A stretch of DNA of 64,000 nt from Trichoplax adhaerens (Eukaryota > Animalia > Placozoa), in contig NW_002060977.1 in the NCBI RefSeq assembly GCF_000150275.1, positions 315,235-379,234 on the forward strand. The letters are read 5' to 3'. Both the position numbers and the translations under genes were made by a program. Positions 7,240 to 30,611 of the stretch are shown in pieces. Below the pieces are notes generated by a model. That model ran no database searches. It saw only the letters and a list, made by a program, of their open reading frames with translations, and was not told where the DNA came from. Position 1 is the stretch's first letter, and the number at the start of each line of letters is the position of its first letter.

Positions 7240-7287
7240 GTGACCGTCTTTTTTCTACTTTAAGAGAGCTTATTAATTTCACTTGCT

Positions 7288-10200
7288 ATGAGAAATACGG
7301 TACCTTTTATTATTATAACATTATTCCAGTCATATGAATTAATGATTGCTTCCGATAATTGTCGACGGACGCCATATAAAATAAATGGACAGTTCTTTGT
7401 ATTCAAGCAAGGAGGTCCGAATCTGAGCTTAACTTGGCCGAAAGCCGCAAGTTAGAACATAATACGACAACGTGATTAGTATTAATATGTAACAATACCT
7501 ATGAAACTATTTCATGGTGTATAAAGAGTAAATTTATAAATTTGAAGCCTTATCTTTGAGCGAAATTGTAGGTTAACCCCGTTAATTTCAACGTAAAAGT
7601 TTAAGCTTGCGACCTCTAAAAGGCAAAAAATGACGTAATTTTGCGTCGTAGTTGTCAAATAGTGCCAATAAAAAATAAGCATAACCCATCATTTATCAAG
7701 CTATGCTGAATTATTATGCACGCCGATCTCTTAAGGATGCTTAACATTTTGAATTAAAATTTACGAAAAGAAATGCCTGAAACAAATCTATATTTAATTA
7801 TTTAAAGCTATACTTCGTTGACTTTCAGCTACAGTACGGGCATTTAATAAATGTTAGTTTCCTAAGATCCTTGTAGATCCAAGATAGTCTTAGATCGTAT
7901 CTCTATAATAAATTAACATAATTTTCTATCTCGTAATTTGATTTAACTATATATTATGTTTCAAACAATTGACAATTTAATTCAATTAATTGTCGAAGTT
8001 ACTACTTATATCTTAAATTGAAAAATTGAATTGGATTTATATTATTTATTAGATATATTATATATATAGCCAAGTATTCTTATGACCTCAATTGATTTAA
8101 TTAACTAGAAATTATTCCCTTCTAATTGTGTCCGTAAAGTTATCTTAAATATAAATGGAGCATTTACGGGAAATAATGTAATAATGCCATGTAAAAACAG
8201 ATATTTGATGTCTACGCTTGATCAGAAGAAGACAAAACTGCTCTAACAATTTGTGCTTTATTACCCACTGTCAACTATTACATCTGAATGGGACTATTTT
8301 AGTGATTAAATAGAATTATTCTATGCTTACAAATCATGTTAACGTTGCATATAAGGTTTAAATAAATTTTTTTTTATTAATATCAAATAGTAAATTTAAT
8401 TTCCAAACCATGAAGTTAAGTAATGATGCTCTTGCTGTAAATAAAATAGAAGCAATCCATAAATTGAGCTAATTTTTTCCTTTTACTTTTAATTAGAATA
8501 ATTCAAGATGTTACCTCCGATTTTTTAGATCCAATAGTAGACTGTGGTGTATTTCAGGAAGTGTATGTACTTGATTCTTACCGTTTTCGCTAAACCGAAA
8601 GCAGTCATTTTTTACAAATCAATTAAGATCTACAAAGTAGGAAATAATTATCTTGCTCCCTTTACTTATCTTAACAGGACTCTTCGATTCTCTCAAGCTA
8701 AAACTATAAAACCAAATTTTTTTGCGGCTTGTCGTGAAATGAAGCATTTGTAAGTACTACAAAAGAAATTTCCCTATGCTGATCTTTATGAAACTGCTTG
8801 CTGCCATATTATCTGCTATGCATCGTATATCTTTCATTGTGCTAGTACCTACAAAAAAATACATCATGCAATAAAAATAATAAAGGTAGCATATTCCATG
8901 CTCTCACGGTCAAGCAAATTTGGAGGACTATTGCGCTATCTTTACTTCTATTTGTTATGATTCATTGTCACAAGCCGGCTTTGTGATAAGATAACATAAA
9001 AACATATTCTAAATTCCCAAGCTTCCGAGATTTACTATCCTTAAACTATTTATAAGCGTTTAGACGCTTTTGTTTCCACATTGCACAACTAGAAAACTGA
9101 TTTTACTCAACTATCTGCCAAACTTATATACCTTATGACAGCAGCTAACTTTAATAAATCATCTTATAACAATAGTTTTAAATATGAACATCTACTAACT
9201 GATTTTACATAGTAAGACTACAATACAAGATATCTATTCACAGAATCATTTCAGTACACTTACGGTCAACTATTAGTCAGAATTACAGCCACAACTACAT
9301 AAGAATTTTTTTTCAGTACCAAGTGTAATTTACTATAATACTTTATAAATTATATAATTGTTAATGATTACTGCAGTAAGAAATTAATCGTAATCTCCAT
9401 TTAGAAATATTAAATTCGCGAAATTTAGTCATTTAATTCTTCATGGTAGTTAGTACATTAATATTCGTATGATCACGAGTCTTTTAGATAGAACTGAATA
9501 GGGCCTCAATATATCGAACGACATCAGTGCTTGATTTTGACAGATATTAAGCCGGAATACCTTGGCTACGTTAATTCCCTATATAGACCCAAATACAGCG
9601 CAGTAAAGCTCAAATAATAGTACACTTTCATATTTTCAACTGTGTGCATGGTTACTATGTTAATGATTGTTAATAATTAATTTTAAAATGACGTTTCTTT
9701 TAATTTTGATTCTCGATGTTTTTGGTTGGATAAAAAAGATTGGCCTTTCCATGTTAAGTCACTTAGGTTGTTAATCAATTCCAAGACTTCTTTATTGAAA
9801 AATATATTGTAATTTGCGAAATGCCTAATCAGTTACCGAAAATGCGCAGTTAAAGCCAATAACTTAATTCTATGTATTAGCTCACGCTATAAAAAATATT
9901 AAATCAGAGAATCCTCTTTCTTTACTGACAGCTAATTCATTGCAATAATCCAAAAGATCAATAAGAAAATGTTATATACCACTATTTTACTTTGAATATG
10001 CAATATGACTAATTTATACGTATGCGATAATTAAAAATCTTATGCCTTTTACGAGTATTCAAATACTTATACATAGATTTGCAGGCGCTAATGCAGTACA
10101 GATAATGAATGAAATAAGTACCAAAATTACATGATTAATCTATAGTCTGTTTTCCCTTATTAAAAGTACTGTATCACTATATTTTAGAATATTCCTTGAC

Positions 10201-13200
10201 GTGATAGTAACATCTGAAATGGAAGATTTATTCGCAAATTCTTCGAAACTTTCTCATATGTAAGCAAATTACAGCGTTAATTAATACGATGATTACCAAA
10301 ATTGCATTACAAATAAATTGTTTAATGATCATTTCTATATGTCCCATTCCGTATACTATGGTAGCCAAATAACTAGGAGTCAATTTGGTAGCAATAATCT
10401 CGCTAGGGCAGTCGGACGTTTGCCTGCTCTGAAAACAGTGTAAGGCGCTGATTCAATTCCTTACTGCTTTTACATGTAGTAGCTACTAAAGTTATCATTT
10501 GTATTATTACCTGGGCTTCAGTACTTTGGACTATAACACCATTGGTAATAACAACATCGATATCAAGTTATTAATCAACAAAAATATTACATCGTTGGTG
10601 ACAATGTAAGTGTATTAATAAAGTTTTTAATAAGATCCTTAATCAATTTTTTAAAGTATTACAACTGATATGAATAACATGGCCAGTGAACTCTACTGTG
10701 TAGTACCGATTCTGCTGTAAATTAATTAGCAAAATGATAAATAATTTTTTCTGCACTTTAATCTAAATGTAAACGGAGTTGCAATTCTTCTTTCAGTAGT
10801 TGTTACTCTATCAATGTTAGTAGCTATACTGTACATCAAAATATCGAGTATTGTATTGGATAATTATGTTGGCGAAGATTCGAAAAAGAAATTAACATTT
10901 TGTGAGGAAATCGCTCCTATTTATGCTTAATATAAGAGACTATAAAACTAATCGAGTAGAGTTAATTTTAGATGTTAATTGTTTTATGGCTTATCACACT
11001 CTATATAATCAATACCAAGCTACCATATGTAATAATATTGCATAAAAATTGTAGCATAATCGGAATAAAAGTTGCATAGTCTTTACGTGATCATAGAATA
11101 CATCATCACATATTACTGCCTTTTTGGAACCGTTTAAAAATACTTCTTGCGCCATTAGGGACCTATCCGGAAATTCTTTAACTTCCTTAGGTCAAGGAAC
11201 GTTTCAAAATTATCAAATGTTGCAGACATTGTAAGCATCATAACGGTATTTTATCCTTACGTATGCATTTGATCGAGTAAACTTAATCAAAAAATTGTTA
11301 GCAATCTTCATCAAAAGATGTGAAATGGATAAAGCTCTTCAATAGCAATCAAATATTAAAATTTATGAACAAGAATTGAGAAAATATCAGCAAATTATCT
11401 ATATAAGTCTGTATTGAGCAGTCCTGAATGAGAATTAATAATTTTAATTTCTAATACGAAATGCGCTTTAATTCTGCTCAATAAAATTTCAATCAGTTCG
11501 ATGAAAACATTATTAAAATGTAAGTAAAAAGTTTGGCATAGATTAACTTAACTAACATTTTTTAATTTTTTGCATAGAATTTTAGACAAAAACAAGATTC
11601 AGTACCTTTCTAATGAAACATTTATTGGCTTATCTAGGCTAAAGAATTTGTAAGTTTGCAGATTTGAGATTGTGATATATACCAATCACGAAATTCCAAA
11701 TTTTAGAAAAATAAGAGCTTTATTGAATCTTATACAAAGATTAACTACACACAGCTCTACTCTAGTCGAATACTACTACTAAAGACTTCTACAACGAACT
11801 AACAGAATAATCTAAAGTTGCATGCTTTATACTTTCCGTAGCATTCACAGCTACAATCCGCATGGCAACCTTTTACCTTATTTTACACATAGTTAAATTA
11901 TTCTTAGTAAGACTATTCTACTACGGACCATCATTAATCCAATATGGATACGACTACAGTACTTACGTAGACATTATTCACACCAGCCAAAGTACAATGA
12001 ATTAAGCATATCCTAATATATGATTTATAGTTCTATTTTTACCTATAGCCTTATTAGTAACTTAACACCTTACTGTATATAGTCATCTGTACTCGAGTAT
12101 AGAGTCTATATCACTACAGTCTATAGTTATAGCTACCAAATATCTCTTAGGATAAATATCTACCGTACATTATACTAAGCATGGCTAACAGTCTACAATC
12201 ACAATACTAGTTACATTACAGAGATATATAATAAAGTATAGATATTAATTTCATTTCATTCCTCTCACAGAAAAATAACTGGAAATCAAATTGATGAAAT
12301 AGAGAATGGGACTTTTAAACCGCTGAAACAGTTACAGTTGTTGTAAGTAAAGAGCATAATTGCATAGACTTTAAGTCCCATTAATCTTTTCTTTAAATAT
12401 CAGTAATATGATACGGAATAAATTTTTCCATTCCGATATAATCAAACAGACGTGTTGATATACTTCTCTAAGATAAAAACTGATTTACTCACTAACAAAA
12501 ATTTCATTGCTTAATTGTTGCTTCATTAAATAGAAACCTAGAGAGCAATTTCATATTATCTGTTCATGAACAAACGTTTGTGGGATTAAGCTCCTTGACA
12601 TATCTGTATGAATAAGAGACTTGCTAATTGTTATAGGAATCAATAACTGTTCTAAGATACTTAACTATTAAGTCAATCTTCGCTTTATGAACAGTAATCT
12701 AGGCTATAATAGAATCAGCAAGAGCAGCCATGATATTTTCCGACCAATTTCTAACATACGTACTATGTATGATAACAATATAGACATTAATTAATGAATG
12801 CTGCAACACTACTTTTAGTCATTTCCATCATAAATTTGTAGAAACCTTTTCATGCTTTCGATTTTATTCAGTGTGCATTAGCATACTATTAACTAATAAA
12901 ATTTTACTTAATGCTACTAATGCCACTTTCTGAAAATAAACTGATCGTAATTTCGTCTTAGGAAATTATCCTATAATCAATTTACTGGAGATACTGATGG
13001 TCTGATAAAGAATTTACGTTTCCTTTCTGAACTGTTAGTGCAGAATGTATTCATATATTTTACGGTTGATAGGACGATAAATTAATTGGCAACTGTAGCA
13101 TTTCTAGATTCAGACTTAGTCATAGAAGCATTGTTATGCAAAAAAGACACTACAATTACTCTGTAACTCAATATTTGCAACAATTGGTTCGTCATAATTA

Positions 13201-16200
13201 ACTATTTAAAGCTAATCTTGGATTATTTTGATTTAGAAACTTCGATAATAATAACATTACAGTCTTGGGAAAGAACGAATTGTCCAATTTGACTAATGTT
13301 GTAATCATGTAATTACAAATTTTACAAATTCTTTTGACACCATGCTACATAACTGATGCTTTATTACTGAATTTGGCTATCACGATTTATTATTAGCTCA
13401 CTAGCTAACAATGCTATCAAGAGCTTGGTGAAATGTAGCTTTTGTCATCTACCTAATTTGACGGAGATGTAAGTACTGAGACTTTGAGAGTTCCTACTTT
13501 TATGACTCTACTACCATACTTAAATTATCTCAAGTTTTGATAACAGCTACTATTGTACTATTAAGATTAATTTCTACTAATTAGGACAATCATTTCCATA
13601 TTCTATATTAGATGTTTCTGAAACTAGAAATTAATTAGATTTTGTGTTTTTGTAGCTCACTACAAAATAACATAATATCCGACATCGCTGAAGACGCCTT
13701 CTACAATTTACCAAATTTATCCAAACTGTAAGTAAATACCCTTTGAGGTATGGTAACTTCTGCTAGATTTTATTCAAATATTTAACTACATAATGTCACA
13801 TCAACTCCTTTCTGGCAGCTTCTATTCCTAAGTAATTCTTGTATCGTACTCCATTATAGCGAATTGCAAACACTTTTAATTAAATAACAGGCAAAAGCAC
13901 TAAGGTATCATCGCCATACTAATTAAAACTAGAAATTTATAAAATGATCATCTACTGCTATTAGTTAATCCTACTACAATTTCTAAATCAGAGTACAAGT
14001 GATTAACGAAGTTCTACTGAAATAGTTAGCATCGCATTTTTAAGATGTATACCATCGATCGTTGTCACGGATTACTTCCTGATATGGTTACTAGTCTAAT
14101 GTAAAGCCCTTAGGTTGAGTTACCTCTACAGATTATTGCCCTAATCGACCAAAAGATTTAGCCAGAATATAGGACTTCTATTGCAACGCCTAAGAACTAT
14201 CCTTCTAAAAGGCTCGCAATCAGTAGACACACAGTACCATAATCTACAAAAAAGCTTTATTTAGTAAACTCACTACTCACTATTCTCCCTCAAAATCAAC
14301 TATTTTAAACCAATAAATACACTCATAAATAAACGTTTAAATTAACAAAGAATTACCAGACATCCCTTAATGGATAATTAGATATAAAGATAAACTTATT
14401 TAAAAAGAATAATCTTATCTAAATTACCGACGTTATTACAAAGCCTTATTGGCTAGTAGCTGTATCGCATTACAAATAGCATGCATAGCTTTCGTTTTCC
14501 AGATTAAACCAGAGTAATATTGATTTGCTATAGCGTATTAGTTCCTGTAGTTGTAAGTACTACAAATCATAGCATTTCCTGTACTATAACACTGCAACAC
14601 TGCACAGTGAGCTACCATACTTTCTTAAATACTTTAATTTAGGTAATGCATTGTCATAAAAATTGTACTGATAACGTCATATTAACTATCAGGGTACATG
14701 TTGCAATGTTTTCTAACCAAATATGAAAATTACTTGTAACTTTTTCATATTGGCACAATATTTCTTTAACGATAACAGCTAGAAAAGTGTGATAAATGTC
14801 ACCGTTGTGCGTCAATTACTAAATAATTTTTAAAACTGTTAACTATTGCATTACAGAAAGCTTAGTAAGAACAATATTGCTATCAAAAATCAACCATTTG
14901 AGGCCTTACAAAGTCTGAAAGAACTGTATGTTTGAGCTTTCCATTCAGTATAGATTACAATGTGTAGCTAACGTACTGATCACATTACTGTAAAAAATAT
15001 GAAATCTTTTCGACAGATACTTGGATCTTAACTCCGTTGGTAATTTTTCTAATAAAGGTCTATCACCGTTTCGTAATCTAAAGAAACTGGAAGTTCTGTA
15101 TGTTAATCAAACATTGTTTACTAATCATTTCACGAAACATACCAATTAACTCTCACTAGTTTAGAAAGCAAACTTAGTTATATAGTAGAATGACCTGTAT
15201 TATTCATGTACACTCAAAAGTAGATTATAAAATTGTACGCAATTGCCTCTATGCAAAATATAGCCTGCGGTAAATTTAATTTAAATTTCTTACTACTTAA
15301 CTTATCGTAATCCTGACTAAAAAGCATTAAAAATATTTAATATCTCTACAAAAATGTTGAAAGAATGCTACTATATCGCACCAAAACATTATAACAATCG
15401 TAGACTATTTTTCGGTAAAGTATTCAATAACTGATATTAAACCCAATACTCCTAATAATAAATACAATGATGTACTAACACAAGCATTTCTGAATAACAA
15501 CGTTCTAAAAATCAGGACTAGCACATCAATGTATTACCAATGGTATAGTCTACGTTTTTTTAAATATCTAATTTGTTCTAATAGGGATTTATCAGGAAAT
15601 AATATACAATTCCTCGAGAAGAGGCTCTTTTGGGGATTAAGAAACTTGAAATATTTGTAAGTATTGGAAAATGATATTTCTAGTATTTTTTTACGATAAG
15701 AAAATACTTGACAGGTAAACTGCTAGAATTTTAATTTTATACTCATACAATGCACTATAATAGTTGATTAGTATACTTTGCAACACCTAACGACCAATCA
15801 TTTAGATCCTTACTAGGGACTCACATGTTATGCAAATTCACACTGATGTACTTTATTCTATCAATGTTATACAAACAGGATGATGTTCAGTTTACTGCTG
15901 TAAAGAATAATGCGACCCAGTATATTAGATCTTTGTGTTTAAATGTAGCTCTATACTCTTAATTTTATCCCAATTTATCTATCTAAATTTTTGTCACGAA
16001 TTGAAACCTGAAAAGTCAGAAATATTAAAATCACTGCCAAAAACTAAGCACAACGAGTCTATCGTCATACTTGTCTTCCTTGGCACCTATTTACATGCTG
16101 GTATCTAATCTAAATATTCACGATTTCTTATCGTCAGGAGGAACAGTAATCTCTAACCACTAGTTTCTCTTAGACAAAATCTGAACACAACCTATACTAA

Positions 16201-19200
16201 AAGCGAATGCAATACTAGTGTATGGTGCATTATTATAGCTATTATTTTTATGACTGTATCGTAATCCATTATGAACGTAGTAATAATTTTCTGACACTCT
16301 AGAAACTGAAATTGTAGTTTAAATTATGCTCACAATTAATACAGCACACTGAATAGCCTTAGTTTTATTCTTAAATAGAAGCCTTCATATACCTCGTATA
16401 TTCTAGTAATAGCCCTCAGACAAATCTTTAGTATTTATGCTCTTGCCACAAAACAGCTTTGCAACAAGTTAACGTAATGTGCGATCAATAAGTCAATTCC
16501 TTGAACCACGTATCAAGAAACGATATCTGCACTATCACAAACACTTTTGCTCTACTAGCAGACTACACAAAGACTTAAACGCCTCGTATTTTACGTCAAA
16601 CACTAAATTTGAGAATCCACTTTATTGTACGATATACTACATTTACATACTATTCCTCTATAGTCCTTGAGTCATAGTTAGTATGATTAACTTTGGAATC
16701 ATTTACTGAATTAGATATTAATTATAGCTACTGATCCCTTAATACAGACAACAGTATTTACGAACATAGACATCTGATGACTAATACAGAATAGTCAGAT
16801 TACGATATGTCTTATCACGGAACATTTCCACGATAATTTACAATCTAGCATAAGTAAGTTACAATCACAAAGATTCGAACTGTAAGTAGATGATTTGCAT
16901 TCCCTGTTATAACTATTTATTTCAGTGTGTGTATATGTGTCTCTGTCATAAAAAGTCAGTGCCATATTAAAACACAGTATATCCAAATTAGAAGTTAACT
17001 AAATAAGGATAAGCTAACAGAATAATCTTAACATAGATATTTCTACTCTAATACAGTATATAACACAGTCACAGCTCTGTAATATGATAATAATGATTGA
17101 TAAATTATAAGTGATAATAATTGAATTAATAAGCAATTATAGCCAGTTGGTCACCATTTTCTTTACACATTTTTCGAAATTCTGAAGGATGAGATTGTCT
17201 ATAATCGATGCCATAATTTTATTAAAAGCCGATCAAGCTAAGTAATTTCTATAAATTAGAAAAGCAAATTAACATATCCTCAAGAATTCACTACTTTTTC
17301 GTAACTTCGACGCCTAGCAGCTTGTAAAGTTAGCTAAGATAGCAAACACAACAGCAGCTATAATTTTTGTTTTTACTGTAACAATCGAAATTGTGGTGCA
17401 AGAAAAGTATGGAAGTGACTGCCTTTATCCTTCATCGATTTAGTAAATTTTACCCATATCTTGCAATTACTTATAATGACTCTACCAAAGCCTATTTCCT
17501 TACCAATAATATCGGTATTGCTCTACCTTGTCCTATTGTACTGATTTCAGTTAACTGTAGTAGTACAGTAGGTGGCTAAAAGGACGAGACAGCCCACATG
17601 TACTGTTTCTAGTATAAGACTGGGGTTCTCTAGTTAAGGTCATATCTAATGCCAAATATAGGACCATGTAGACTGCCTTCCATGTAAGAGTGTGAGGTTG
17701 ATAGACTAAGAATCTTTAAAACTTTAGAAAATTAAGATTTATTGAACAAAACCTCCTTTACGAAGATACAACGTAATCGGTTAGCTGAGGACCTCTAACA
17801 AGAACGAACTATCTTACCATACTAAACTACTCGCTTTTATACTTTTCCGCGTTTACAGTATTAGCACCTTACTTACTACACACTTCAGTATTAGCATCTC
17901 AAATACAGGATAGTTTACATCTTTCATTTGAAGCTCTAGCGTGAGCACTGCAGCACTCCTCTTCAAAAGGATTACAGTTACTAAGCGAGCTCCATTTAAT
18001 ACTTAAGCCTCTAACGAGAATATCTATCACATGTTGAACACAACACCTAGGGTAGACATTACTAAATATATCATCAACTTAGAATGCAATATTACACTGT
18101 CTTACAAAGAGTTAAAGTATAATTATTTTATTAATCTTAGCAAGATGTTAAATCAAGCTTTTACAGTCTCGAATTATTATGTCTACTATAGAATAGAAGC
18201 ATTTATTGGGTATAGTTTGTATATAGATAAGATGTACTTTTGTGCAGATTTGTCTAAGTGGTATTATCCGGTATATCTTAGTCGTTTTCAATTGTTCTTA
18301 TGAGGAGAAGAAATTGAAAATCTTCTCCGACAGACGGATGTATCAATAAACGTTATTATTCAAGACTATTTTTTCGGTGTTGACCTTCATGTATCACATA
18401 AGGGAATTACCCAATTTTGTTAATTCAAATTTTGGGTTACGTAAGTAAGTGACCCTACAATAATAACAGGAGACTATCACTCGGTCATTACACCTATATA
18501 CAACTTTCTGGTTAACGTTTACAATTTTAACCTAGCCAGCTAGATCTACAACAACGGATCAATTAATTTCCACTAAAATGCTGAACTCATATTTCTAAAA
18601 TAATCCCTTATGCAAAGACTATCCTTAGTTAAGCAATAAATAATTTAATTAACTTCTCTAAATATCGATAGCAACTTAATAACATTTCCTTGAATATGCT
18701 TAACAAAATTTTGCGACTGAACGTTTTGTTTCTTATCAATAGTATCATAATATTGCTGATTTTTAAGATACCTATGCGTAGATTATACTCATAATTATTT
18801 ATTTATTAGCAAATTACAGATCATGAGCATGTTATTTTATGTTTATTACCATCATAATTTTAAAATTTTTTAATTTAATTTGAAATAACTTAATTAATTT
18901 ATCTAATTCTCTATGGCAATAGATTCCTTGCAGATAATTTCATTTTCGATATCTTACCTGATACCTTCCAATCAATGGATGCATTGATTCATTTGTAAGG
19001 CTAATCATAAATCCGATAGCAAAGCCTTCAAAGTTGATGTATACTACCTTTACGCCCATCATCGGCATTACAAACTGTTTTCATCAGTGCTTTTCTCAAT
19101 ATTCTTTCGCAACATTCTTTCGCAACATTCTTTCGAAATGTAAACATAAATTATATTTCCATTCTTTCACAAACTTTAGACGCCTAGAACAAAATTTAAT

Positions 19201-22200
19201 CGAAAAAATTACGGGGAATCAAATACGAGGCTTAACAAATCTCCAACATCTGTAAGTTCTCTTAAATTATAATTACTCTAGTATACATTGGTATGTATTC
19301 CCTTGCTGTCTATTTGATTCAAGTAAAATTAAGAAATGACGATAATTACTTAGCCTATACCAAACACTGTGAAGTCGGATATTCCAAAAATTCTTTCCAC
19401 TAATCCATTTCAAAATATTACATTTGTATGCAGAAATTTAGCAAGTAACCCAGCGAAGATGATCGAACTGGATGGTTTAAATGGTCTCAATAACTTGGAA
19501 ACTTTGTGAGATATTTTACTTTGCCTTGACATCGCAGTATATAAATTTTTATCTCAGAATTAGTAATTATTAAAAATCATTTCATCATTTCATAAAAAAT
19601 TAGTTAAATTAATGATCTAGTGCTAAGCTAAAGGACATTATGCAGATTTATCATTATATTTTATTCGTTCAGTTGTAATCCTAACACTTTTGAATTGATA
19701 AACTTAATTCATGATAGGGATTTACGAGGCATTTACCTTGACAGACTAGATAAATTGAAGATAAGCCAAATTCCAAATCTGAAAAAGCTGTTCGTATTAA
19801 AGACAGTATTATTAATTCATTTTTTGCTGATAGTAAACAAAACAGTCGATATCAATAAGGTATGTAGTCTAAACATGATAGAATGTATTATTTTCTATTA
19901 TGGTCTAGGAATATGTACAGGAATAAAATTAAGATTGTTGACTACACACCTGGATTAATTTCTACAAATATCACCATCGTGTAAGCTTATTCCATAATCG
20001 TAAACAGCAAATATATAGTGACCGATAAAATAATGTAACAAGTAACAATTTTCCATTATCCTTCCAGAGATCTTTCCTTCAATAGTATATCCGTTGTAAA
20101 GGGTTTTAACTTACTAAATTCTGTTCGAACATTGTAAGAAGTCATACGTATATTAATTAATTTCTTGCAATAATTATAATCATCTGTCGCATTGCGTATA
20201 TCCTGGGATCATAATTAAAGTCATTAATTAGCGATTATTTACCATTAATAGCAACCTATCATATAATCAATTAACGTCGATGTCGCAACTAAATCTTCAA
20301 AACTTAACTTCTTTGACAAAACTGTGAGTTCAAAAATCACTCTCCTTCGATGTTTTAGTAATAGTAGTAACAGTTATTATAAGATTTTTTTTCTAATTTA
20401 CCTTTTAGATTATTAAACTACAACCTTATAAGAAAGATAGAGGCAAAAGATATCCATCGAACTCTAAAAATTAGTACTATCAATAAACTGTAGGTTATAA
20501 TTCGGATTTATAGTATTTGAATGGCGTATTATCTTTGAATATAAAAACTTATAGCTTGATCATCCTGTACTATTGCTATGAAAGAGATTAACGAATCTAT
20601 TACATAGTTAATGTAAATCATGCTTGATTATACGTTAAATACGGACATTGCTTAAATTTTTTTCTGTATGCATAAAACTAAAAAAAGCTTAGTGATTAAT
20701 TTGAAACCAGAATAGTTATAATATCAGGAGTGCCTAATTAAGTTAAAATAATATGCAAATAAACCTTAATTTCATCAATGATGCTCGAAATAACTTATCA
20801 TCAGATCAAAATTAATTTATTCTCGAACATTAACAGCAATAGCTATAAAATAAAGGCAATCATAGAATAACAACAAGCCAGTGATAAGTAATACATAAAT
20901 AAGTAATGATAAAGCGAATTTTTCGGAGATCCGACAGTCCCCTTTTACAAATTTATGTAGCTAAACAAACTTTATTTCGTAAAATAGCGGATAAAAAACT
21001 ACTTTAAATAACATTTAATGCAGGGATTTTGCCAATAACCGTTTGTATAAGATTGATCCATTAGCTTTCATAAATGCTGAAAATTTGAAAGTAATGTAAG
21101 TTGAGGTTTCCTCTATGATATCCAATGCTTGTCTGCTTTAATCAATAACTTTATGTAATGGTGGATGATTCTTAATTTAAATTTCAAATGTGTCATGCAC
21201 AAGTTACGAATTGCCGATAGCTAGTCAGTTTGAACTGATAGCGATTGTAATTTAATATCACAAAGCCAACATTACTACATTTCCTAAACTAAATTCATTT
21301 ATTTTGAATAGCTATATTAATAATAATAAGCTACAGGAATTAAGATTTCTCCAAACGATTCCAAGTCTGGAAGAAGTGTAAGTTTAAGAAATAATAAGCA
21401 TCTCATAAATTTTGTTGATTTATATTAGTAAGTATTTGAGCTACAGATTGCAAGAAATTTTACATACTATATTTATGAAACGGCAATAAAATGCTTTAAA
21501 GCTGTTGATCGTACTAAACTCAAAACGTGTATTTAAATAAAATTTATCTGTACATAAAATTATGGTGAAGTATCATCTAATATCCGAACAAGTCATTTTT
21601 ATTGAAATCGATTTGTATTTTCAGCAATGCATCGTCCAATTTCATTCTTAATCTTGATCAATATGTATTTACTCAACTCCGTTCCTTGAAAATCCTGTAA
21701 GTTATCAGATCTGAAAGTAGCTAAAGTTGAGAATTAAGCATTAATACAGTTTATGATTCGTTGACAAAATCAACTTGGTTTAAGTTACATATTACTATGT
21801 TTTATCCCTACTTGATATTTACGTCAGAGATATATCCTCAAATCACCTGCAGAAAATCGATTCTGAAGCCTTCGTCAATTGTTCTAATTTGACAGAATTG
21901 TAAAATACTTTTTTAAGACTATAATATTGCTGTGGCTATTGCTTTAAATATTTTCTTATATCTTTATTTTGTTTGTATAGAAATTTCAAAGCAGAAATAA
22001 AAATACAGAAATATTTTCTCTATCTTATGCACTCAGTTCTCATTATTCTTTATTTTAGATATCTTGAAAATGTCGGATTAACATCGTTAAGCCAGATCAA
22101 TATGACCAAACTTGATAAATTAACTAAGCTGTAAGTTTTACTTCAAACTATGACCTTATTGTCTTTGATAACTACGGAAATATTTAACAATGCTACTTTT

Positions 22201-25200
22201 CACATAATCTAACATAAGAATAACTCAGTTAAATAAGATATGGTAAAATTTTTAACCTATTTAAATTCAAATTTAAGCCGATTTTCGGATATAATTGCAG
22301 AATTATTCGAAATAATAAAATATTGAAACTTGAAAATGAATCCTTTGAAGGTTTGACTGCGTTACAGTTATTGTAAGTGCTATAATATAAGCAAGATATT
22401 TATTATTTTAATATTTTAGTTAATTATAGCTGCTCTAACTAATGAATTTATAGATAAAAATTTGCAATAGATGATAATATATACTACTCAATTCCATATT
22501 AATACACAAGCTAATCTTGCATTTTAAATAATTCTACTATCACTCTCGATTTATAGGGATTTATCAAAAAATATGATCTCTCATTTATCCAGCAAAGTTT
22601 TTTCATTAGCTCAAAATTTATTTAAAATGTAAATAATTAACTTTCATGCATATTGTAACTTACTGCAGTATAACACAAATATATAGAGCATTAGAAACCT
22701 TAAATAGAAATTTTTGTTTCTTATAGTACGGCTGACGAAAATCAATTATCGACGTTTGACAGCGGCATACTTTGCATAAATAGAAAAATAGCCTTCTTGT
22801 AAGATAGACAGTAAAAGTAATATTTTATAAGATCAATATTCTATTCAATGAATATTGTCTTACGTGGATATGTAACCCGTGCATTTTTATGCAATCAAAC
22901 TATTGCTGAAAAGACATATTCTACCGCCTTTTTCAATTGTGTATATGAACGAGGCCGGATGCGAAATCAGTCATTTTGTATAATGCCCAATCCTTTCCTG
23001 TATAAATTTGACAAAATAGCTTAAAATATGCTTTGTGGTTAATAGTAATTATCTTTATACTTGGGATGATTTTAGCTGCTTACACTAGTACATTAATATC
23101 TTTTTTAAAATCTAACAGTAATATGAAGTAATGATTTATGTGACGTATAATAATCTGTTACCGTTATTAAAATAATTGTAAATTATTATCTTTACTTCAA
23201 ATCATTAGATTTTCTGACTTAATAGTGAGAAAAGAACCACGATAGTGTATGAAATATTAGTCTTCGTCACAATTTGCGTTAAATTTTGAATGTAGGGAAT
23301 TATCAAGCTTAACCTGCCAGCTGAAATGACTAAATCATTCCGATTTTCTTCAATTGTGATATACTTTTAGAAGTTTTCAGTCAAATAAAATAAGCAAAGT
23401 TATAGATACAAAGTGTCCCGGCGATTATACCAGAATAGAAGGAATGTAAGTACTCAATAAAATTGATTAATCTCATGCATTAATAGTTTATACACAACTC
23501 AAATTATCAGTGCTTATATGTAAGAATCTCTCATGTAAATCCAAGACTGTGTGATTCTCGTCACTATAATTATGTATAATTGTTATGAGTACGGTATTTT
23601 CTAACTACAATTTCAACGCAAAACTAGAAATTTAAATAATAACAGACTTGATGATGGATTTGCTGCTTTACTTAAAAGAACAGCTGTTTTGAAATTTCTA
23701 TCGGAATTGTAAGTCCATTCTAAGTTCAGTTTATCACAAGTTTGTCTGTTATTAAAGGTGTGATTCAAATTAATTTATGATTTCATTTAATAAAATATTC
23801 GTACTAAAGCTAATTCTTATCTACCTGTCATTTTAATTTGATTTGGTAATAGAACCTATTCTCCATTAGAAATATAGGTAGTAATCAAATCACGAAATTT
23901 CCGGAAGAAATCACTCGCTTAACAAAGATCAGCTTACGTGCCATGTATGTATGCTATTCTACTTTTTATGCCGGCTAAGAAAGCTAATTAAACACTTATG
24001 AAGTTCAGTACTTATTTCTTTCCTTTTCAGAAATATTGGGTATAATCGCGTTGATAGAAAGACTATCACTAATTTCATCGAAGGATTGTATTACTTTAAC
24101 TACTTAGCTTGCCTCCAAACTCCAGTACCACTAATCTGTAAATTCTACTCCATGTAAGAGTATTTATATGCCACTAAATCAAGTATTTAAGACTTCTTTC
24201 ATCTCCAGTTATTATGAATAGCATGCATCTTAATAATTATTGTACAGGATATTTAGCCCTCTACTAAATTATGTATTCCCACTCACTATACTAATCATAA
24301 GCTTAGGCATTACAATTTAGCTATTTTAACATGATCACGGTGTAGGATTTTATATTTGCCGATACCATAAACATTTTTATGCAAACACATATAAATAATT
24401 AGGCATAGTTAACCTTTATCAAAAATAGATCGATGCATCCAGAGAATGCCAATTAATGGCAGTAACGATTTTCGGGTATTTTTTAGTTTTAAATGCCTCG
24501 TCAATCTTTACAGCAAAGCAGCTGATATGAACGAAAATATACTTAGCAACAGAGAAATTTAAATTTCAGATGTTAATATTATAGAACAATAAGGCATCTC
24601 TAATCAAGAATTCTTCGCTTTATCGTTTCTAGAATATCAATAAAGTTATATTTCAATTTGATAGCGTTCATAGTAATAACATGTAAATTAAATAAGTATA
24701 GTTAATACTCAATTAGATTAGTAAATCCTATTCAGCCTCTTTTTTCCTCAAAAAGATACCATTTTCTCTAAATCGTTAACATGATTACTTAGAAATTCCA
24801 TTTGCATGATTACTAATACAAATTTCTAACTATTTTCTTACAGTGATCTTAGCGGTAGCTATTTAACAAAATTAAACCATGGAAGCTTTGCAGATATTCA
24901 CGATAGTTTGGGGGCATTGTAAGATTCTGTCTTGCTAAATAACAAAAATTAAAACATTACAGTGATAAAACAGCGTCATAGAGATAATTTTTAGACTCTT
25001 ATTCATAAACAATTCAACGTTTCATATCCAATACTATGATTGTTTATTTAATTAAATACGTTACACTAATATCTTAACATTAGATACTTAAGTGATAATC
25101 ATTTAGTCCAACTGGATGTGGCTGATTTATTCAATGTTACTAATAATGTTCTACAAAATCTGTAAGTGAGAAGTATTGAGTTCATGTCAGTATCTTAGCT

Positions 25201-28200
25201 AAGCTTAAACTCGAATTAAGATATTTTAATTACGATCGCTTTTTCAAAGTACGAATGCTTTTTATGTTTATTTTCTATAAAAAGCTATTTGGCTAATAAT
25301 AAATTAAAAACAATAACTACCAGGAAAAAATACCAAATGAATAATCTACTTCTACTGTAAGTTAATAATATTTCTTCATGCTTTGGAAACCTGTTTAAAA
25401 ATTGTATAGAATCTTTTCTAATATCCTATAGATACTGTTTTATCTTGCCAGAGTAGCGAACATTTAAAGCAGATTCGATTTAATTATTTTAATATGATTG
25501 CTGTATTTCCATAACTTGGCTAATACAATTCCCGAGTAAGATGTAGGAGATTTAATTGATATTTTTTTAACAGTGATCTCAACGGCAACATGATCACCAA
25601 TATTTGTCAAGAAAGTCAAATATCAATTTCTGCGCCTAATATTAGAACTCTGTAAGTACTGTTGTCACAAACCAGCTTCGTGACAAGGATAACGTAAAAC
25701 ATATCTCTAAATTACTATAGTCTCCGGGATTCAGTATCCCTTAACTACCTCACAACAATTTAGACGCCTTTGCTTCTACGTTAAATTCAACTAGACATTA
25801 GAGAACTACTTTATTCAAGTATCTGACGGGCTTATATACCCTTCTACAGCAGCTAACATTCATGAGTCATCTTATAAAAATACTTAGGTGAGAACATCTA
25901 CTAACTAATTTTTCACAGTCGGACTACAATAGGTCCATTCACAGAATCATTTCAGTGCACATTACAGCACGCATTAAATTTACTGTAACACATTTATAAT
26001 TAGAGTAATTCCTATTGCAGGTAACTAGTTGTAATATATTATCATTATATTATATTCACCAAATTTAGATAGCTATTTCTTCACGGTAGTTCGTACCGTG
26101 ACAACTGTATAGCAAATCTTTCATCGTTCGTAACGAATTGATGTAAATTAATTAAATTTTAATAATATTCGCTTTCTATGACTATAAATTAAACACTCAG
26201 TTTAATACACATATATGCGTTGATTCTATAAACTTACCTATTTACTTTAAGGGTCATAATTTATTTTCCTATATTAATGGCATGATGTACTTCTATCAAA
26301 TTTGTGACATTAGTGTGATGTTTCGGAAGATTGTGGATTCGTCATGATCACAGTAAATTACCAGAGTTAATTTAGTAGAGGAATAGAGTTTATTGGAATT
26401 AGTGCAAAGGAAAGACCGTGTGAGATTACAGCATGTATAACGACGTGACTAGTCGAATAGCTATAGTAATGTAGCATAGGTAAAGCGTGCAAGCTTACCA
26501 AGTAACTAGCAGAACTAACTAACGAGATAGGTGAAAGAAGATAGCTTTTATAATGTATGAAGCACAGCAGGAGGAAATCATAAATGACTAATAAGAATAT
26601 GTTACTTCTATGTTAAGACAGGGCTACGATATAATTCAGCTAGATTCAAAGCGATTTCCACAGAGTATTTTGTTAAATATAAATTATACATATTTAGAGT
26701 TATGCTACAATCTAGTGGAAATTGACTTTTACTAAAAATAGACTATACCGTATTTAGAAGTAAACACTACAATTAGCATCTTCCTTAACATTTATACCTA
26801 TCTTAGACGACTAAAAACCTAATTTGCCATTACTGTACATAAATATCGATATTTATTTGTACTATGTTACATATTTAATTCTAGACTACTAGATAATAAT
26901 GATGTCAGAATCCTCGCCAACAGGTGTTTTAAAACCTTTACAAAATTGAAAACTTTGTAAGTAGTTGTTACGGAGTAATTTTTGAGTAGCTATCGTAACA
27001 TAGATTTCATTAGATCATTTATTTAGGAATATATTTACAAACGGTTATCTTTGATGCTTTACATGTTTTTATTAGATAACTGCATATATTTTTAATATTT
27101 ATCTATAAACTAATAATTAATGTTTACGTAAAATTTTCAATAAATTGACTTACTTTTCAATAAAGTTTAGGCTCAGTTATGTCTGAGACAAACTACTGTT
27201 TTGTTACTGTTCCTCCTGATGATAGGAAATCGTCAATATTTAGAATCCTACTGTAGGTTAATGTCAGGGAGGACTATCCTGATAGTAGACTCATAGTATG
27301 CAATTTCTAAAATAGCTTAACATTTTCGTCATTAAAATATAAGTTTGGAACAGAAGTAAAATCGAAACATTTTACCTGCATATAAAATAAAAAGTACTCA
27401 ACTAAAGGCAGAGTATCACATGTGTTTATGTCGTTTCTTAAATTCTTTTCTTTAAAATAACTATTATCTAATTACGTCAATATGATAATGTATCATCGAA
27501 AAGATCGACTATAATTGCTTATTTCTCATTACTCTTATTTTAATTAGATCTCTAGTAGATAATCCATTAGTTCAGATCACTGCTTCTTCCTTTTATTTAA
27601 CCCCGGAACTAAAAGAAATGTAAGTATAACAGGAATCTAAAATTAAATTGTTATTCCAAAGAAGTCTCTATTAAAAATTGTATTAAAAATAAGTATCAGT
27701 ATTACAATTGTCTATTCCTAAGTCAGTCTCTAATTCTTAATAACTGATACTTTAATCCTAAACTATTATTTAACTTTTTATGACATCGCGCTTCAACGAT
27801 ACATGTATAACATAGAACATCCACTAGAGAATATCTATGTTGCATCGTTCCAGCTACAGTTGGATACTGCAAGCCATATATTGAACAAGATGCATTTACA
27901 ACATGCTCAGATATTTTATCTCATTATTCTCTCAAGTTATTTGTCTGGGTAATTGGATGTCTTGCCTTTATTGGAAATTTAATGGTTATCTACATTCAGT
28001 TTTTTAAAGTTACTAACGAAAGTGAACCTGTTCCAATGCTGTTGATTACCAATTTGGCAGTGTCAGATCTAATAATGTCTATTTACATGCTAATCATCGG
28101 TATTGCAGACATAATATATCACGATCATTATGCATATAATGCAGAAACTTGGCTAAGAAGTATAACATGTGGTATAGCTTGCTTTTTATGCTGTTTTGCT

Positions 28201-28923
28201 AGCTTAATGTCAGTGTTAATGATGTTTATTATTAGCATTGATAGGTATATCTATATTGCATTTCCTTATTCCACTGTTAAACTATCGCCTTACTATGCCA
28301 AAGTTCTTATGGTGATTTCGTGGTTATTTTGCTTGATATTTGTTTGCATACCAACTGCATACGGTCTGAAGACAGATGGCAACCACAGATTGTATCGATA
28401 CACTAGCATTTGCATGGCAAGCAACGTTAAGAATTATTACTATCGCTTATGGATTATTGTTTACGTTTCCATTACCTTAGTATCCTGGCTAATCACATGC
28501 AGCTTATATGCTCATATGTTTATAGCAATTCACAAGACTGCTAAAGCTACTGTATCTACTGCATCTGATAGTGAAAAGCGAATTGCTATTCGATTATTTG
28601 CGATCATTGTAACTGATTTGGTATCTTGGCTTCCTTATTATTTCTACACCATTCAGCTTCTAATCAGTCCAACATCATCTGGTGTTATTGTATTACAATT
28701 TGCAGTCATACTAGCATTGCCTATTAATTCAGCTATTAATCCCTATCTGTACACGTTAACCAGTCCCCGTATCATTAAATTAATTCAACGTCGTATCCAT
28801 AACTACACCCATTTAGGTAGGATTGAACCTCGCAGCGACGACCAAACACCACTGCGTACTAGCGGCGTAAGCGAACTAAAAGATACTTTTCCTCGTTCGA
28901 ATGGCCAGAAATTAACTGCATAG
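7288..28923 (+). CDS. Gene 1: multi-exon giant leucine-rich-repeat GPCR (LGR, type C / RXFP-GRL101-like), about 41 LRR exons plus hinge and 7TM
   Basis: Exons read from AG/GT boundaries, all open in frame: 7288-7450 (MRNTVPFIIITLFQSYELMIA..., signal-peptide-like, tentative) and 8529-8562. LRR exons: 8678-8749, 10188-10259, 10365-10439, 10522-10605, 11159-11230 (DLSGNSLTSLGQGTFQNYQMLQTL), 11578-11649, 12271-12342, 12534-12605, 12695-12766, 12962-13033, 13237-13308, 13397-13468, 13656-13727, 14857-14925, 15017-15097, 15585-15656, 18923-18994, 19180-19251, 19434-19505, 19718-19789, 20068-20133, 20252-20323, 20409-20489, 21024-21095, 21312-21377, 21625-21696, 21828-21899, 22059-22130, 22301-22372, 22557-22628, 22727-22798, 23371-23445, 23628-23708, 23870-23944, 24031-24153, 24844-24918, 25084-25161, 25285-25356, 25574-25651, 26885-26956, 27548-27619. 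Terminal exon: 27816-28923. Confidence 0.9.
8966..9463 (-). mobile_element. Solo-LTR-like element, family B copy 1 (gene 1 intron)
   Basis: Homologous to 25663-26103; starts TGTCACAA; flanks TTCAT/TTCGT. Confidence 0.75.
11671..12220 (-). mobile_element. Solo-LTR-like element, family C copy 1 (gene 1 intron)
   Basis: TGTGAT...ATTACA ends; exact TSD GAGAT (11666-11670 / 12221-12225). Confidence 0.88.
16444..17073 (-). mobile_element. Solo-LTR-like element, family A copy 2 (gene 1 intron)
   Basis: Reverse-complement copy of 1815-2444; TG...CA ends; exact TSD GCTCT (16439-16443 / 17074-17078). Confidence 0.9.
19101..19135. repeat. Short intronic tandem repeat (ATTCTTTCGCAAC x about 2.7)
   Basis: Directly visible 13-bp unit. 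Confidence 0.85.
25663..26103 (-). mobile_element. Solo-LTR-like element, family B copy 2 (gene 1 intron)
   Basis: Perfect TGTCAC...GTGACA inverted ends; exact TSD ACTGT (25658-25662 / 26104-26108); terminal region related to family A. Confidence 0.88.
26303..26771. mobile_element. Repeat family D (LTR-like, TG...CA) in gene 1 intron
   Basis: TGTGACA...ACTACA; homologous motifs at about 6844 and 40698; no clear TSD. Confidence 0.55.
27816..28923 (+). CDS. Terminal exon of gene 1: short Cys-rich hinge plus complete rhodopsin-class 7TM domain
   Basis: Acceptor catag at 27815 extends ORF 27982..28923 upstream: TSTREYLCCIVPATVGYCKPYIEQDAFTTCSDILSH... TM1 FVWVIGCLAFIGN, TM2 LITNLAVSDL, TM3 SIDRY, TM6 TDLVSWLP, TM7 LPINSAINPYLYT. 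These are LGR/RXFP-type motifs. Confidence 0.96.
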
Positions 28924-28938
28924 AATTAACATTATTAG

Positions 28939-28944
28939 AATAAA
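28939..28944 (+). terminator. Candidate polyadenylation signal AATAAA of gene 1
   Basis: AATAAA 15 nt after the stop codon; weak evidence in AT-rich DNA. Confidence 0.25.
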
Positions 28945-30611
28945 GGTTACTGATGAAAGGAAAAAGTACTTCTTTATAAATTAAGTTTCGAAGTGTAAAT
29001 TTGGCTTCAGATTTATGGGAAGACAACTGATACTCTCACTTACAGCTATAACAGGAGACTGTATAACTGCAAATATTGAGAGATAAAACTAGTTCTCTAA
29101 TTTCGTTTTACTTGAAGGTAGAAGCATCTAAGTTACTACAAGACTTATTATATGCTAAATGATACTGCAAGCAACTCACCAAAATGCGATAAACAAGGTT
29201 TTGTTTCTTCGTTATTCTTGCTGTAAAGCTGGCTTGCAAAGGCGCTATAAGCGTATATGCTTAAATCCTAGATTGTTTACTAATACTATAGTCTAAAATA
29301 ATTGCATTAGCAAAACGATGGCGTAAAGTAATTTAAGTCTACCATATCACTCTAAAATAGCTGTACTAGTACTGCTTCGTGTTAAATATTTGGGTTTATC
29401 ACTACTTAAAAGATATTTTAACTTAAAAAAATATTCTAACAGCTTTTCCTATTTATTAGTAGTGTTATAATTTTGACCGAATACAGTTCGGATCGGTTTG
29501 TGATAGTTAGTCATACCGCGCTAGCGCGTAGTAATCCAGTACATCGGTATTCATAATATTTAAAGACTTGCACAACGGTACAGCTGCTGGTTTTTGTTTT
29601 AGTGATTCGACTCTAGTCAGTCAACTCATCAGGATTGCAGTTAGTAATTGCCAGTTATCGTAAATTATAAGTAATTATAATTGTTTGAGAAGTTTAAGCG
29701 CCATCGTGTACGCTGTTCGATTTAGTCACGTTCAGTAGTAAGATTCATCAGGATCTGTATTATCTCAGTTAGACCGCAAGGTCAAATAATATTCAACGTC
29801 GTTGTGGATCATTACTTAGTCTCAAATAAAGAGTAACCCAGGACTAACAGATATCGGTCAGGTATTGATCATTTCAGTAGAAGCAGTCCAATTAGTACAT
29901 TAGTTGGAGTACCTTGAGAATTTCCCGCATCCGCAAAGGCGTAGTTCTCATACAATACGTCAAATATACTGAACGGTAACAAGTAGTGCACTCATGCTGA
30001 GCTTTTATATACTATCATAATAGCAATTTAGGCCAGTTAGTTATTTCTTTTAACATACGAGGTAAACTTATACGACTAACCTATTCTACCTTACTATAAG
30101 TATCTACAGGATTTTATCATGTAGTCCTCACTTGTAAAAATTTAGCACTATTATAGAAATGTTGCGTAAATTGAAATAAAGTGGCGTTTGCCCATAATAT
30201 AAGTTGGTATCAATTATAATTACCTGGGTTTCAGAGTAGTCATAAAATATGCTTTCCCATCATTACTTAATAAACCTAATACTTCTGCGACAATCGATTC
30301 CTAATTTAATCTAATATAGCGCGGCTGAGCAACAAATAGGCAGGAGCTACACCTGCTCTTAAGACGTAAAGTCAACTGAAATCATCAGAGATTGCACAAT
30401 GAATTGTGGGCAAATCGTAAATGTTAATTGTTTTCGAGATATGCTTAGCTGAAATAAATACATAAAGCTGTCGTACTGCTACACACAAAATTATGGCTAA
30501 ATTAAATTACTGGTATCTAATATTACGAAGTAATTTTCGATGAGAAGACTTGCCTCATATTCAGTCGATAATATAACTTGACATTGTTTGAAAATACTGA
30601 TTGCATATGAT

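Follow-up and report, generated by a model that had tools for sequence, protein, structure and literature searches.

A Trichoplax adhaerens gene for a hormone-receptor-type G protein-coupled receptor in which each of about 42 leucine-rich repeats has its own small exon

The window analysed here, a stretch of 64,000 nucleotides of Trichoplax adhaerens DNA (contig NW_002060977.1, positions 315,235 to 379,234), carries on its + strand a long chain of small exons. A putative start exon (7288–7391) is followed by 42 internal exons of the leucine-rich repeat (LRR) type (8678–27619) and by a single intact exon encoding a hinge and a seven-transmembrane (7TM) domain (27816–28923). Each of the 42 exons is a multiple of three in length and is bordered by phase-2 introns on both sides. 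The most common size was 72 nt (28 exons), the remaining ones being 66 (two), 69 (one), 75 (four), 78 (two), 81 (three), 84 (one) and 123 nt (one), with a summed length of 3123 nt or 1041 aa. An earlier note on this DNA had described about 41 symmetric phase-2 exons of 66–123 nt, mostly of 72 nt; interval and PSSM scans upheld this pattern and corrected the count to 42.

In the interval scan, AG..GT intervals that were a multiple of three, open in the phase-2 frame and matched the LRR pattern were found 67 times in the frame of the gene on the + strand, as compared with 4–6 times in each of five control frames/strands. For 72-nt intervals alone, the numbers were 44 and 0–3, respectively. When 217 kb of the scaffold was scanned on both strands with an LRR PSSM combined with a splice-site score, 233 hits exceeded the cut-off of 8 bits in the forward direction and none in the reverse one. 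The codon split by the exon junction encoded L, I, V, M or F in all 38 exons from 11159 to 27619, which corresponds to the conserved hydrophobic position of the LRR. The exon pattern of a giant LRR gene was confirmed as real.

Five paralogues, each with 40–42 LRR exons, are arranged in tandem on the scaffold, and the gene occupies the fourth place among them. At its 5′ end, exon 1 (7288–7391) was predicted from the sequence by an ATG, a hydrophobic signal-peptide-like stretch and a phase-2 GT donor; no homologue of it was found in the paralogues, nor was a CxC-type cap motif observed. The next four exons are LRR-type: exon 2 (72 nt, 8678–8749) with a splice score of 19 bits and a weak colinear match in paralogue gC (C1380:283668), exon 3 (72 nt, 10188–10259) with an open phase-2 frame and good splice sites, exon 4 (75 nt, 10365–10439), colinear with gC at 286132 (E = 0.001) and gB at 244374, and exon 5 (84 nt, 10522–10605), colinear with gC at 286332 (E = 3e-4). 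Paralogues gA and gC likewise have the 75/84 size pair of exons 4 and 5. LRR exons 6 to 14, all of 72 nt, are located at 11159–11230, 11578–11649, 12271–12342, 12534–12605, 12695–12766, 12962–13033, 13237–13308, 13397–13468 and 13656–13727. Exon 15 (14857–14925) has 69 nt, a size kept at this place in all five paralogues, exon 16 (15017–15097) has 81 nt (78 or 81 nt in the paralogues) and exon 17 (15585–15656) again has 72 nt.

Exon 18 (72 nt, 18923–18994) is preceded by an intron of 3266 nt that contains a repeat of about 640 bp at 16432–17073. An interspersed repeat is also contained in the intron before exon 8 (12271). Hidden exons in the long introns were considered and rejected, as interspersed repeats account for the intron length.

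Downstream of the long intron, exons 19 and 20 (19180–19251 and 19434–19505) and the degenerate repeats of exons 21 and 22 (19718–19789 and 19909–19980) are of 72 nt. Exon 23 (20068–20133) has 66 nt and exon 25 (20409–20489) has 81 nt, both sizes being kept in five of five paralogues; between and behind them lie exons 24 (20252–20323) and 26 (21024–21095), each of 72 nt. Exon 27 (21312–21377) has 66 nt, and exons 28 to 33, located at 21625–21696, 21828–21899, 22059–22130, 22301–22372, 22557–22628 and 22727–22798, have 72 nt each. For exon 34 (75 nt, 23371–23445), the acceptor at 23371 was picked by the 75-nt size of the exon in the paralogues.

Ten GT..AG joints were identified within 23000–28923 in spliced RNA contigs from four runs of four studies. 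These are all the introns between 23445 and 27816, including that between the last LRR exon and the 7TM exon. The donor joint of exon 34 (23445>23628) and both joints of exon 35 (81 nt, 23628–23708), exon 36 (75 nt, 23870–23944), exon 37 (123 nt, 24031–24153), exon 38 (75 nt, 24844–24918) and exon 39 (78 nt, 25084–25161) were present in all four runs. Exon 37 is irregular and contains a Cys pair; its counterpart in gA, gB and gC is a 120-nt exon with both Cys kept. For exon 40 (72 nt, 25285–25356), the joint 25161>25285 was found in four runs and 25356>25574 in three. The joints of exon 41 (78 nt, 25574–25651) and of exon 42 (72 nt, 26885–26956; 25651>26885 and 26956>27548) were found in three runs, and exon 43 (72 nt, 27548–27619), the final repeat, was joined to the last exon (27619>27816) in four. 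Single contigs of 1648–3293 nt span the ten introns into the 7TM exon, and the RNA depth was zero in intron bins. One X7 contig reads 23296–23445 unspliced.

The splicing of LRR exons to the 7TM exon, as claimed in the earlier note, was checked directly for exons 23371–27619, which are joined to it in four RNA runs. The contig of run X4 is the longest one (3293 nt), and its length implies about six further exons and a reach of ~21377–21600, that is approximately to exon 27 and with exon 28 inside the inferred reach. For the exons upstream of ~21600, the continuous frame, the colinearity with the paralogues and the length of this one contig point to membership of the same transcript. The earlier note was right in describing a single giant gene for an LRR-GPCR, in which every LRR occupies a symmetric exon of its own, with the 3′ exons joined by RNA and the upstream ones by such reasoning.

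An alternative is that the exons from 7288 to ~21000 form a separate transcription unit, encoding a secreted or anchored LRR protein, or are used only from an alternative promoter, with the receptor beginning downstream, e.g., after the 15656–18923 intron. This agrees with the reach of RNA to ~21377 by contig arithmetic and strictly to 23371, with the unusual length of the 3.3-kb intron and with the public models of the paralogues, which are N-terminally truncated and begin inside the LRRs. However, the repeat insertion accounts for the long intron, phase and frame are unbroken over 42 exons, and the hydrophobic junction codons run on from 11159. Moreover, all five paralogues keep a series of 40–42 exons before one 7TM exon, no other terminal exon being found between the LRR series and the 7TM exon in any of them, and in the Trichoplax sp. 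H2 model RDD37287.1 (GenBank; partial, 1270 aa) about 35 LRRs are joined to a 7TM domain. Two separate units are thus very unlikely.

The comparison of the five tandem paralogues revealed a near-identical series of exon sizes. For 34 of the 42 exons, the best match in gC lay on the diagonal; with gB, this was true of 30. Exon pairs within the gene shared at most 48% protein and 58% DNA identity. The size series and the exon-for-exon similarity shared by five genes indicate that the array is old and fixed and does not consist of interchangeable cassettes. At concave-face positions, the fraction of identical residues relative to gB and gC was 0.51–0.67, as opposed to 0.23–0.30 at other variable positions; judged from these alignments, such conservation fits a constrained binding face. 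In the AF2 model of paralogue P0054 (mean pLDDT 78), seven helices come after about 30 beta strands at even spacing.

These data bear on the combinatorial receptor proposed in the earlier note, in which varying subsets of exons would be skipped to give many ectodomains on one 7TM domain, similarly to Dscam or VLR. Skipping of any of the 42 internal exons would keep the reading frame, so such skipping is possible in principle, the unspliced stretch of the X7 contig indicates that processing is not perfectly uniform, and rare isoforms, which contigs drop, are compatible with the contig data. Nevertheless, no exon-skipping joint was present among the RNA contigs of four runs over the last eleven exons of the gene, and single contigs contain all of these exons. 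The position-specific conservation of size and sequence in five colinear paralogues is expected if each repeat is needed in place, and the strong divergence of the exons is unlike that of alternative-exon clusters. Symmetric LRR exons of ~72 nt with one intron phase are the ordinary design of LGR genes, as in FSHR, LHCGR and TSHR. Like Dscam1 and lamprey VLR, the gene builds a recognition ectodomain from numerous small coding modules. Dscam, however, has clusters of similar, mutually exclusive exons and VLR relies on somatic cassette assembly, whereas the exons here are dissimilar and fixed in order, have 1:1 counterparts in the paralogues and are all included in the observed transcripts. The combinatorial proposal found no support and is regarded as highly improbable.

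The last exon is open and matched Pfam 7tm_1 (PF00001) with E = 1.9e-24 over the full 260-position profile. Its translation contains a Cys-rich hinge (CC..C..C), with four Cys within the first 36 residues, seven TM helices and a C-terminal tail ending with the stop at 28921–28923. The DRY and NPxxY motifs are intact, as are the Asp of TM2 and the cysteines of TM3 and ECL2, which upholds the earlier description of an intact hinge and 7TM end exon. The equivalents of the hinge cysteines (C709, C710, C719 and C731) were invariant in 16 long relatives. Among solved structures, the exon was closest to RXFP1 (4.7e-33), TSHR (7e-30), FSHR (1e-28) and LHCGR (6e-28), with SSTR2 (1.8e-13) as the best non-LGR match, and therefore resembles the known LGRs more closely than the remaining class A receptors. 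The similarity to type C LGRs (RXFP1/2, GRL101) extends to the hinge, as the alignment with RXFP1 (7TMW) begins at residue 9 of the exon. The gene thus combines a rhodopsin-family 7TM domain, a Cys-rich hinge and an LRR ectodomain that, in its upstream part by inference, lies on the same polypeptide, as in LGRs.

The LGR4 match of the 7TM exon reached only E = 4e-14, no better than that of somatostatin receptors. This is relevant to the idea, drawn by analogy with LGR4-6, that the protein may be a G-protein-independent scaffold or adhesion molecule, in which the 7TM domain would serve as an anchor or co-receptor and the solenoid would mediate cell–cell or matrix contact. LGR4-6 provide the precedent that an LGR-type 7TM domain need not act via G proteins, and a solenoid of ~1000 aa could bridge intercellular distances. 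Against this stand the intact signalling motifs of the 7TM domain, its far closer similarity to RXFP1/TSHR than to LGR4 and the position of the stop inside the 7TM exon, with no long open frame downstream of it; such a role is considered improbable.

The general layout of an LRR ectodomain, a hinge and a class A 7TM domain is shared with FSHR, LHCGR, TSHR and LGR4-6, but glycoprotein hormone receptors and LGR4-6 have 9–11 or ~17 LRRs, and type A LGRs differ from the studied gene in that their hinge is long and carries a sulfated tyrosine. RXFP1/2 also have one LRR per exon. Unlike here, RXFP carry ~10 LRRs and an N-terminal LDLa that is essential for activation; at the motif level, the LDLa cysteine/acidic pattern was absent from all + frames of 1–12000, and in length the ectodomain exceeds that of RXFP by a factor of four. 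Outside placozoans, the relatives of the 7TM domain included long LRR-GPCRs from invertebrates, among them echinoderms, such as Amphiura filiformis XP_072040752.1 (1311 aa), with E of ~1e-35, an ectodomain of ~900 aa and at least 26 LRR motif matches. The identity was ~30–35%, concerned the 7TM domain only and was matched in two stretches. Ectodomains with more than 25 LRRs are therefore found beyond placozoans as well.

The best protein relatives were all from Trichoplax (40–67%), and 107 related 7TM matches were detected in the genome. Between the window and a contig of Trichoplax sp. H2, the identity is 99.58%; the H2 orthologue bears the public name 'GRL101-like'. The last exon matched the H2 protein P0001 by 100%, with one residue differing; this model includes exons 42 and 43, and the H2 model of the gene ends at a contig break within an intronic repeat. 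No full-length public model of the gene was found.

Hauser, Koch and Grimmelikhuijzen (2022) reported 46 LGRs of T. adhaerens, described 41 placozoan-specific LGRs with unusually many LRRs, such as Tadh-LGR15 with 34, and identified the models by TriadITZ numbers in their Supplementary Table 2 (PMC9545775). The studied gene very probably belongs to this expansion, having an LRR number far above types A–C and its own hinge, and may be one of the 46 models. It shares with the published receptors the species, an LGR-type class A 7TM domain, an own Cys-rich hinge, a long LRR ectodomain and membership of a large lineage-specific family, some gene models of which follow one another in tandem. In contrast to the 34 repeats drawn for Tadh-LGR15, there are ~42 here. 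Exon structure, tandem-cluster colinearity and splicing evidence, which are not part of that report, are given here for the studied gene. The novelty that the earlier note had seen in the scale of the ectodomain was overstated in view of the published oversized receptors (PMC9545775), RDD37287.1 and the four neighbours with 40–42 exons.

Taken together, the locus is a real, expressed T. adhaerens gene for a hormone-receptor-type GPCR with ~42 LRRs, one per small exon. It very probably represents one constitutively spliced gene of 44 exons with an inherited exon plan, encoding an LGR-type receptor of ~1,440 residues. The predicted protein would consist of a probable signal peptide, ~42 continuous LRRs of the 24-residue 'typical' type, each on its own exon, the short hinge with its four cysteines and a 7TM domain of the rhodopsin class, of the same kind as in LGRs (RXFP/glycoprotein hormone receptors). 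The ligand, bound by the concave face of the LRR solenoid, would be a macromolecule and most likely a protein, either secreted or at a surface. As in RXFP1 and glycoprotein hormone receptors, the hinge would transmit the ligand-induced change to the 7TM bundle, which would activate a heterotrimeric G protein. The symmetric phase-2 layout would go back to the inherited design of LGR genes, enlarged by ancient duplications of exons, and would not be a device for making variants.

The ligand could instead be of microbial or food origin, the giant LRR-GPCRs acting as pattern-recognition receptors with G-protein or arrestin signalling and not sensing endogenous hormones. This reading agrees with the gene structure of the constitutively spliced receptor and differs in the ligand alone. 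Placozoans do not have true TLRs and have C-type lectin domains linked to GPCRs (PMC6321704), the family is large, both in 7TM matches and in placozoan-specific LGRs (PMC9545775), and the ectodomain exceeds that of any hormone-binding LGR in length. On the other hand, the concave face is conserved between close paralogues and not hypervariable, and the 7TM domain and hinge are nearest to those of hormone receptors; this function is considered unlikely. In a further version, judged extremely unlikely, the receptors would substitute for TLRs as environmental or microbial sensors, with low-frequency in-frame skipping varying the ectodomain per cell or clone and wired to G-protein signalling.

The presented analysis does not define a new class of system, as oversized Trichoplax LGRs have been published and combinatorial splicing is unsupported. 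It provides an evidence-backed gene structure where the public models are fragments and a plan of 40–42 repeats that is fixed and common to a tandem cluster of five genes. For the cloning and de-orphanising of placozoan LGRs, the unit to express is the full ectodomain, and close paralogues with the same concave face may have related ligands.

The window, C1380:315235-379234 of Trichoplax adhaerens, is AT-rich eukaryotic DNA (28-35% G+C). The last large open frame of the gene, 27816-28923 on the forward strand, was stop-free on translation and covered the whole Pfam 7tm_1 profile (E 1.9e-24). To find the exons lying upstream of it, an exon-aware scan was performed for AG/GT-bounded intervals with a length that was a multiple of 3, an open phase-2 frame (a single base over at the 5' end, two at the 3' end) and a start of the form xLxxNxI. 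The scan returned 67 LRR-type intervals in the phase-2 frame of the forward strand, versus 4-6 for each of five controls (the other frames or strands), and 44 intervals of exactly 72 nt compared with 0-3 in the controls. When 217 kb of the scaffold were scored with a position-specific LRR profile together with splice-site scores, 233 candidates exceeded 8 bits on the forward strand and none did so on the reverse. A strict LxxLxLxxNxL expression applied to six-frame translations showed no enrichment because the LRR motif is split by the intron.

The internal LRR-type exons, 42 in number, spanned 8678-27619 and summed to 3123 nt, or 1041 residues. Their lengths ranged from 66 to 123 nt, 72 nt being found in 28 of the 42. 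The codon split between neighboring LRR exons (two end bases and the first base of the next exon) falls where the repeat conserves a hydrophobic residue, and it encoded Leu, Ile, Val, Met or Phe at all 38 exons from 11159 onwards. Such uniformity would be surprising unless the exons are spliced in the order given. A layout with each LRR on its own exon and all the introns in one phase is usual for LGR genes, such as those of FSHR, LHCGR and TSHR. The earlier note had proposed about 41 symmetric phase-2 exons of one LRR each, ending in an intact hinge and 7TM exon, and both parts of this description were borne out. A putative exon 1 was predicted at 7288-7391 (forward strand) from an ATG, a hydrophobic signal-like stretch and a phase-2 donor. 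No homologue of it was detectable in the tandem paralogues, and a 5' exon was not recovered by tblastn with the N-termini of the paralogue models, which begin within the LRRs. Interspersed repeats, and no hidden exons, were present in the three very long introns of the gene.

The expression and splicing of the 3' part were examined by comparing 5924 letters (23000-28923) with the contigs of four RNA runs from four studies. All 10 predicted GT..AG joints in this region were present in spliced RNA contigs: 23445>23628, 23708>23870, 23944>24031, 24153>24844, 24918>25084, 25161>25285, 25356>25574, 25651>26885, 26956>27548 and 27619>27816, the last one connecting the final LRR exon with the 7TM exon. 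Seven of them were found in every run; the other three were each found in three of the four. The depth of RNA contigs was zero in the intron bins. Individual contigs of 3293, 2473 and 1648 nt ran across the joints into the 7TM exon, and the longest continued 946 nt beyond the stop codon. Its 513 nt lying 5' of 23628 corresponded to a 75-nt exon and six 72-nt exons and, by length arithmetic, should reach to about 21377. The giant LRR-GPCR gene is real and expressed. The suggested splicing of the upstream LRR exons to the 7TM exon was confirmed by RNA joints for the 11 exons nearest to it and probably holds for the last 17, the connection further upstream being inferred. No exon-skipping joint was listed in the contigs of the four runs over 23000-28923, contigs being prone to drop rare variants and minor isoforms, and the idea of combinatorial ectodomains generated by skipping was thus left unsupported. 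In one run (X7), a single RNA contig was unspliced across the acceptor at 23371 (23296-23445), representing pre-mRNA or intron retention.

The intron between 25651 and 26885 carries an interspersed repeat of 443 bp, at 25662-26104 and 26314-26771, with at least 40 full copies in the genome at 94-97% identity (491 first-look candidates). RNA contigs covered this repeat at depths of hundreds to thousands and joined it to many different flanking sequences, and an Rfam search with this highly expressed sequence gave no match. Its features suggest a transcribed, non-autonomous element of recent origin. Between 25831 and 26500, RNA contigs differed from the genome most often by A>G; such an excess could come from differences among the copies of the multi-copy repeat, strain differences or editing. 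Another repeat of about 640 bp was present in five copies in both orientations (1815-2456, 16432-17073, 34783-35416, 54682-55328 and 59301-59932), and a second element formed an inverted pair (11662-12159 and 37447-37945). Copies of these elements were located in the intergenic stretch as well as within the long introns of the two receptor genes. LRR exons and long open frames were absent from the region of about 17 kb separating the receptor genes (28924-46600), the longest frame there being 96 codons on the minus strand (43290-43577). This region seems to be mostly repeat-bearing spacer. Downstream of the stop, no long open frame was detected, kinase-like or otherwise.

A genome search with the 7TM exon gave 107 matches with E < 1e-10. 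Five of the 7TM loci lie on the same scaffold (NW_002060977.1, C1380) at 34-39 kb intervals, at 230668, 269792, 309209, 343051 (this gene) and 379534, and each is preceded by 40-42 LRR exons. The fifth gene, a second complete giant LRR-GPCR gene, occupies the right third of the window, with about 40 one-LRR phase-2 exons at 46636-63163 on the forward strand and its 7TM exon 300 bp past the window end (C1380:379534-380463, forward strand). That exon is only 35% identical to the 7TM exon of the gene studied here, yet the two genes have nearly the same series of exon sizes. Across all five genes, the series was almost identical (...69, 78/81, 72 x6, 66, 72, 81, 72, 66, 72 x6, 75, 81, 75, 120/123, 75, 78, 72, 78/81, 72, 72), yet the 7TM exons shared just 35-64% identity. 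In exon-by-exon comparison, 34 of the 42 exons had their best partner at the corresponding position (on the diagonal) in the upstream neighbor, and 30 of the 42 did so in the paralogue beyond it; different exons within the gene showed at most 48% protein and 58% DNA identity. The irregular 123-nt exon at 24031-24153 (forward strand), confirmed by RNA and located six repeats before the 7TM, encodes two cysteines and is conserved in three paralogues as a 120-nt exon with both cysteines. This exon may add an insertion closed by a disulfide bond, or it may act as a joint within the solenoid. Elsewhere in the genome, the 1.5 kb preceding each of the 29 next-closest 7TM loci contained phase-2 LRR exons directly upstream in all 29, on the gene strand only, and many of these loci finished in the same 75-78-72-78-72-72 series. 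The positional identity and the conserved lengths across paralogues indicate that the LRR array is ancient.

In Trichoplax sp. H2, the 7TM exon corresponds to a 418-aa protein annotated as 'GRL101-like, partial', from which it differs by one residue. The H2 contig NOWV01000271.1 matched the window at 99.58% identity across 12.3 kb (45 mismatches and 4 gaps between H1 and H2), its positions 202-12532 corresponding to 26593-38926 and its end (1-151) being repeat. The H2 protein is a fragment because the assembly is interrupted within the intronic repeat. Protein searches, restricted by a length filter and a word index, were run with the 7TM exon and with the 7TM region of a paralogue of 1270 aa, and gave no public model covering the whole gene; GenBank has H2 models of 1062-1270 aa.

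The size of the ectodomain had been put forward as novel, a view overtaken by the literature. The re-annotation of T. adhaerens by Hauser, Koch and Grimmelikhuijzen 2022 lists 46 LGRs, with Tadh-LGR15 drawn with 34 LRRs (PMC9545775). Long proteins of this kind occur in H2 and also in the brittle star Amphiura filiformis, whose relative (XP_072040752.1) has 1311 aa and at least 26 LRR motif hits. What is added here is the full exon map of the gene, the five-gene colinear cluster, the transcript evidence for constitutive exon inclusion, the cause of the truncation of the public model and the conservation of the concave face described below.

The nearest solved structures to the hinge and 7TM exon were hormone-type LGRs: RXFP1 (E 4.7e-33), TSHR (E 7e-30), FSHR (E 1e-28) and LHCGR (E 6e-28), followed by LGR4 (E 4e-14) and somatostatin receptor 2 (E 1.8e-13). 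The translation retained DRY, NPxxY, the TM2 aspartate and the TM3/ECL2 cysteines, and the four hinge cysteines were invariant among 16 long relatives. A motif-level search of every forward frame of 1-12000 revealed no LDLa motif, so under a strict definition the gene falls outside the type C LGRs. As a stand-in for its protein, the 1062-aa database paralogue was modeled with AF2 using a 16-sequence alignment. The model (mean pLDDT 78) placed about 30 beta strands at regular intervals along residues 7-721 and seven helices after them.

The solvent-exposed concave-face positions (x5, x7 and x8 of LxxLxLxxN) were compared between colinear exons. Their identity between the gene and its two closest paralogues was 0.51-0.67, with 0.23-0.30 at other non-scaffold positions and 0.20 and 0.11 in a shifted control; the signal was lost against two more distant paralogues. 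Judged from these alignments, the concave face looks like a constrained binding face common to a subgroup. In immune LRR receptors this face is hypervariable, whereas here it is conserved between close paralogues. A conventional LGR mechanism with a macromolecular ligand is likely, its ligand, coupling and cell type being presumptive. That every repeat holds its place and length is what would be predicted for a solenoid that functions as a whole.
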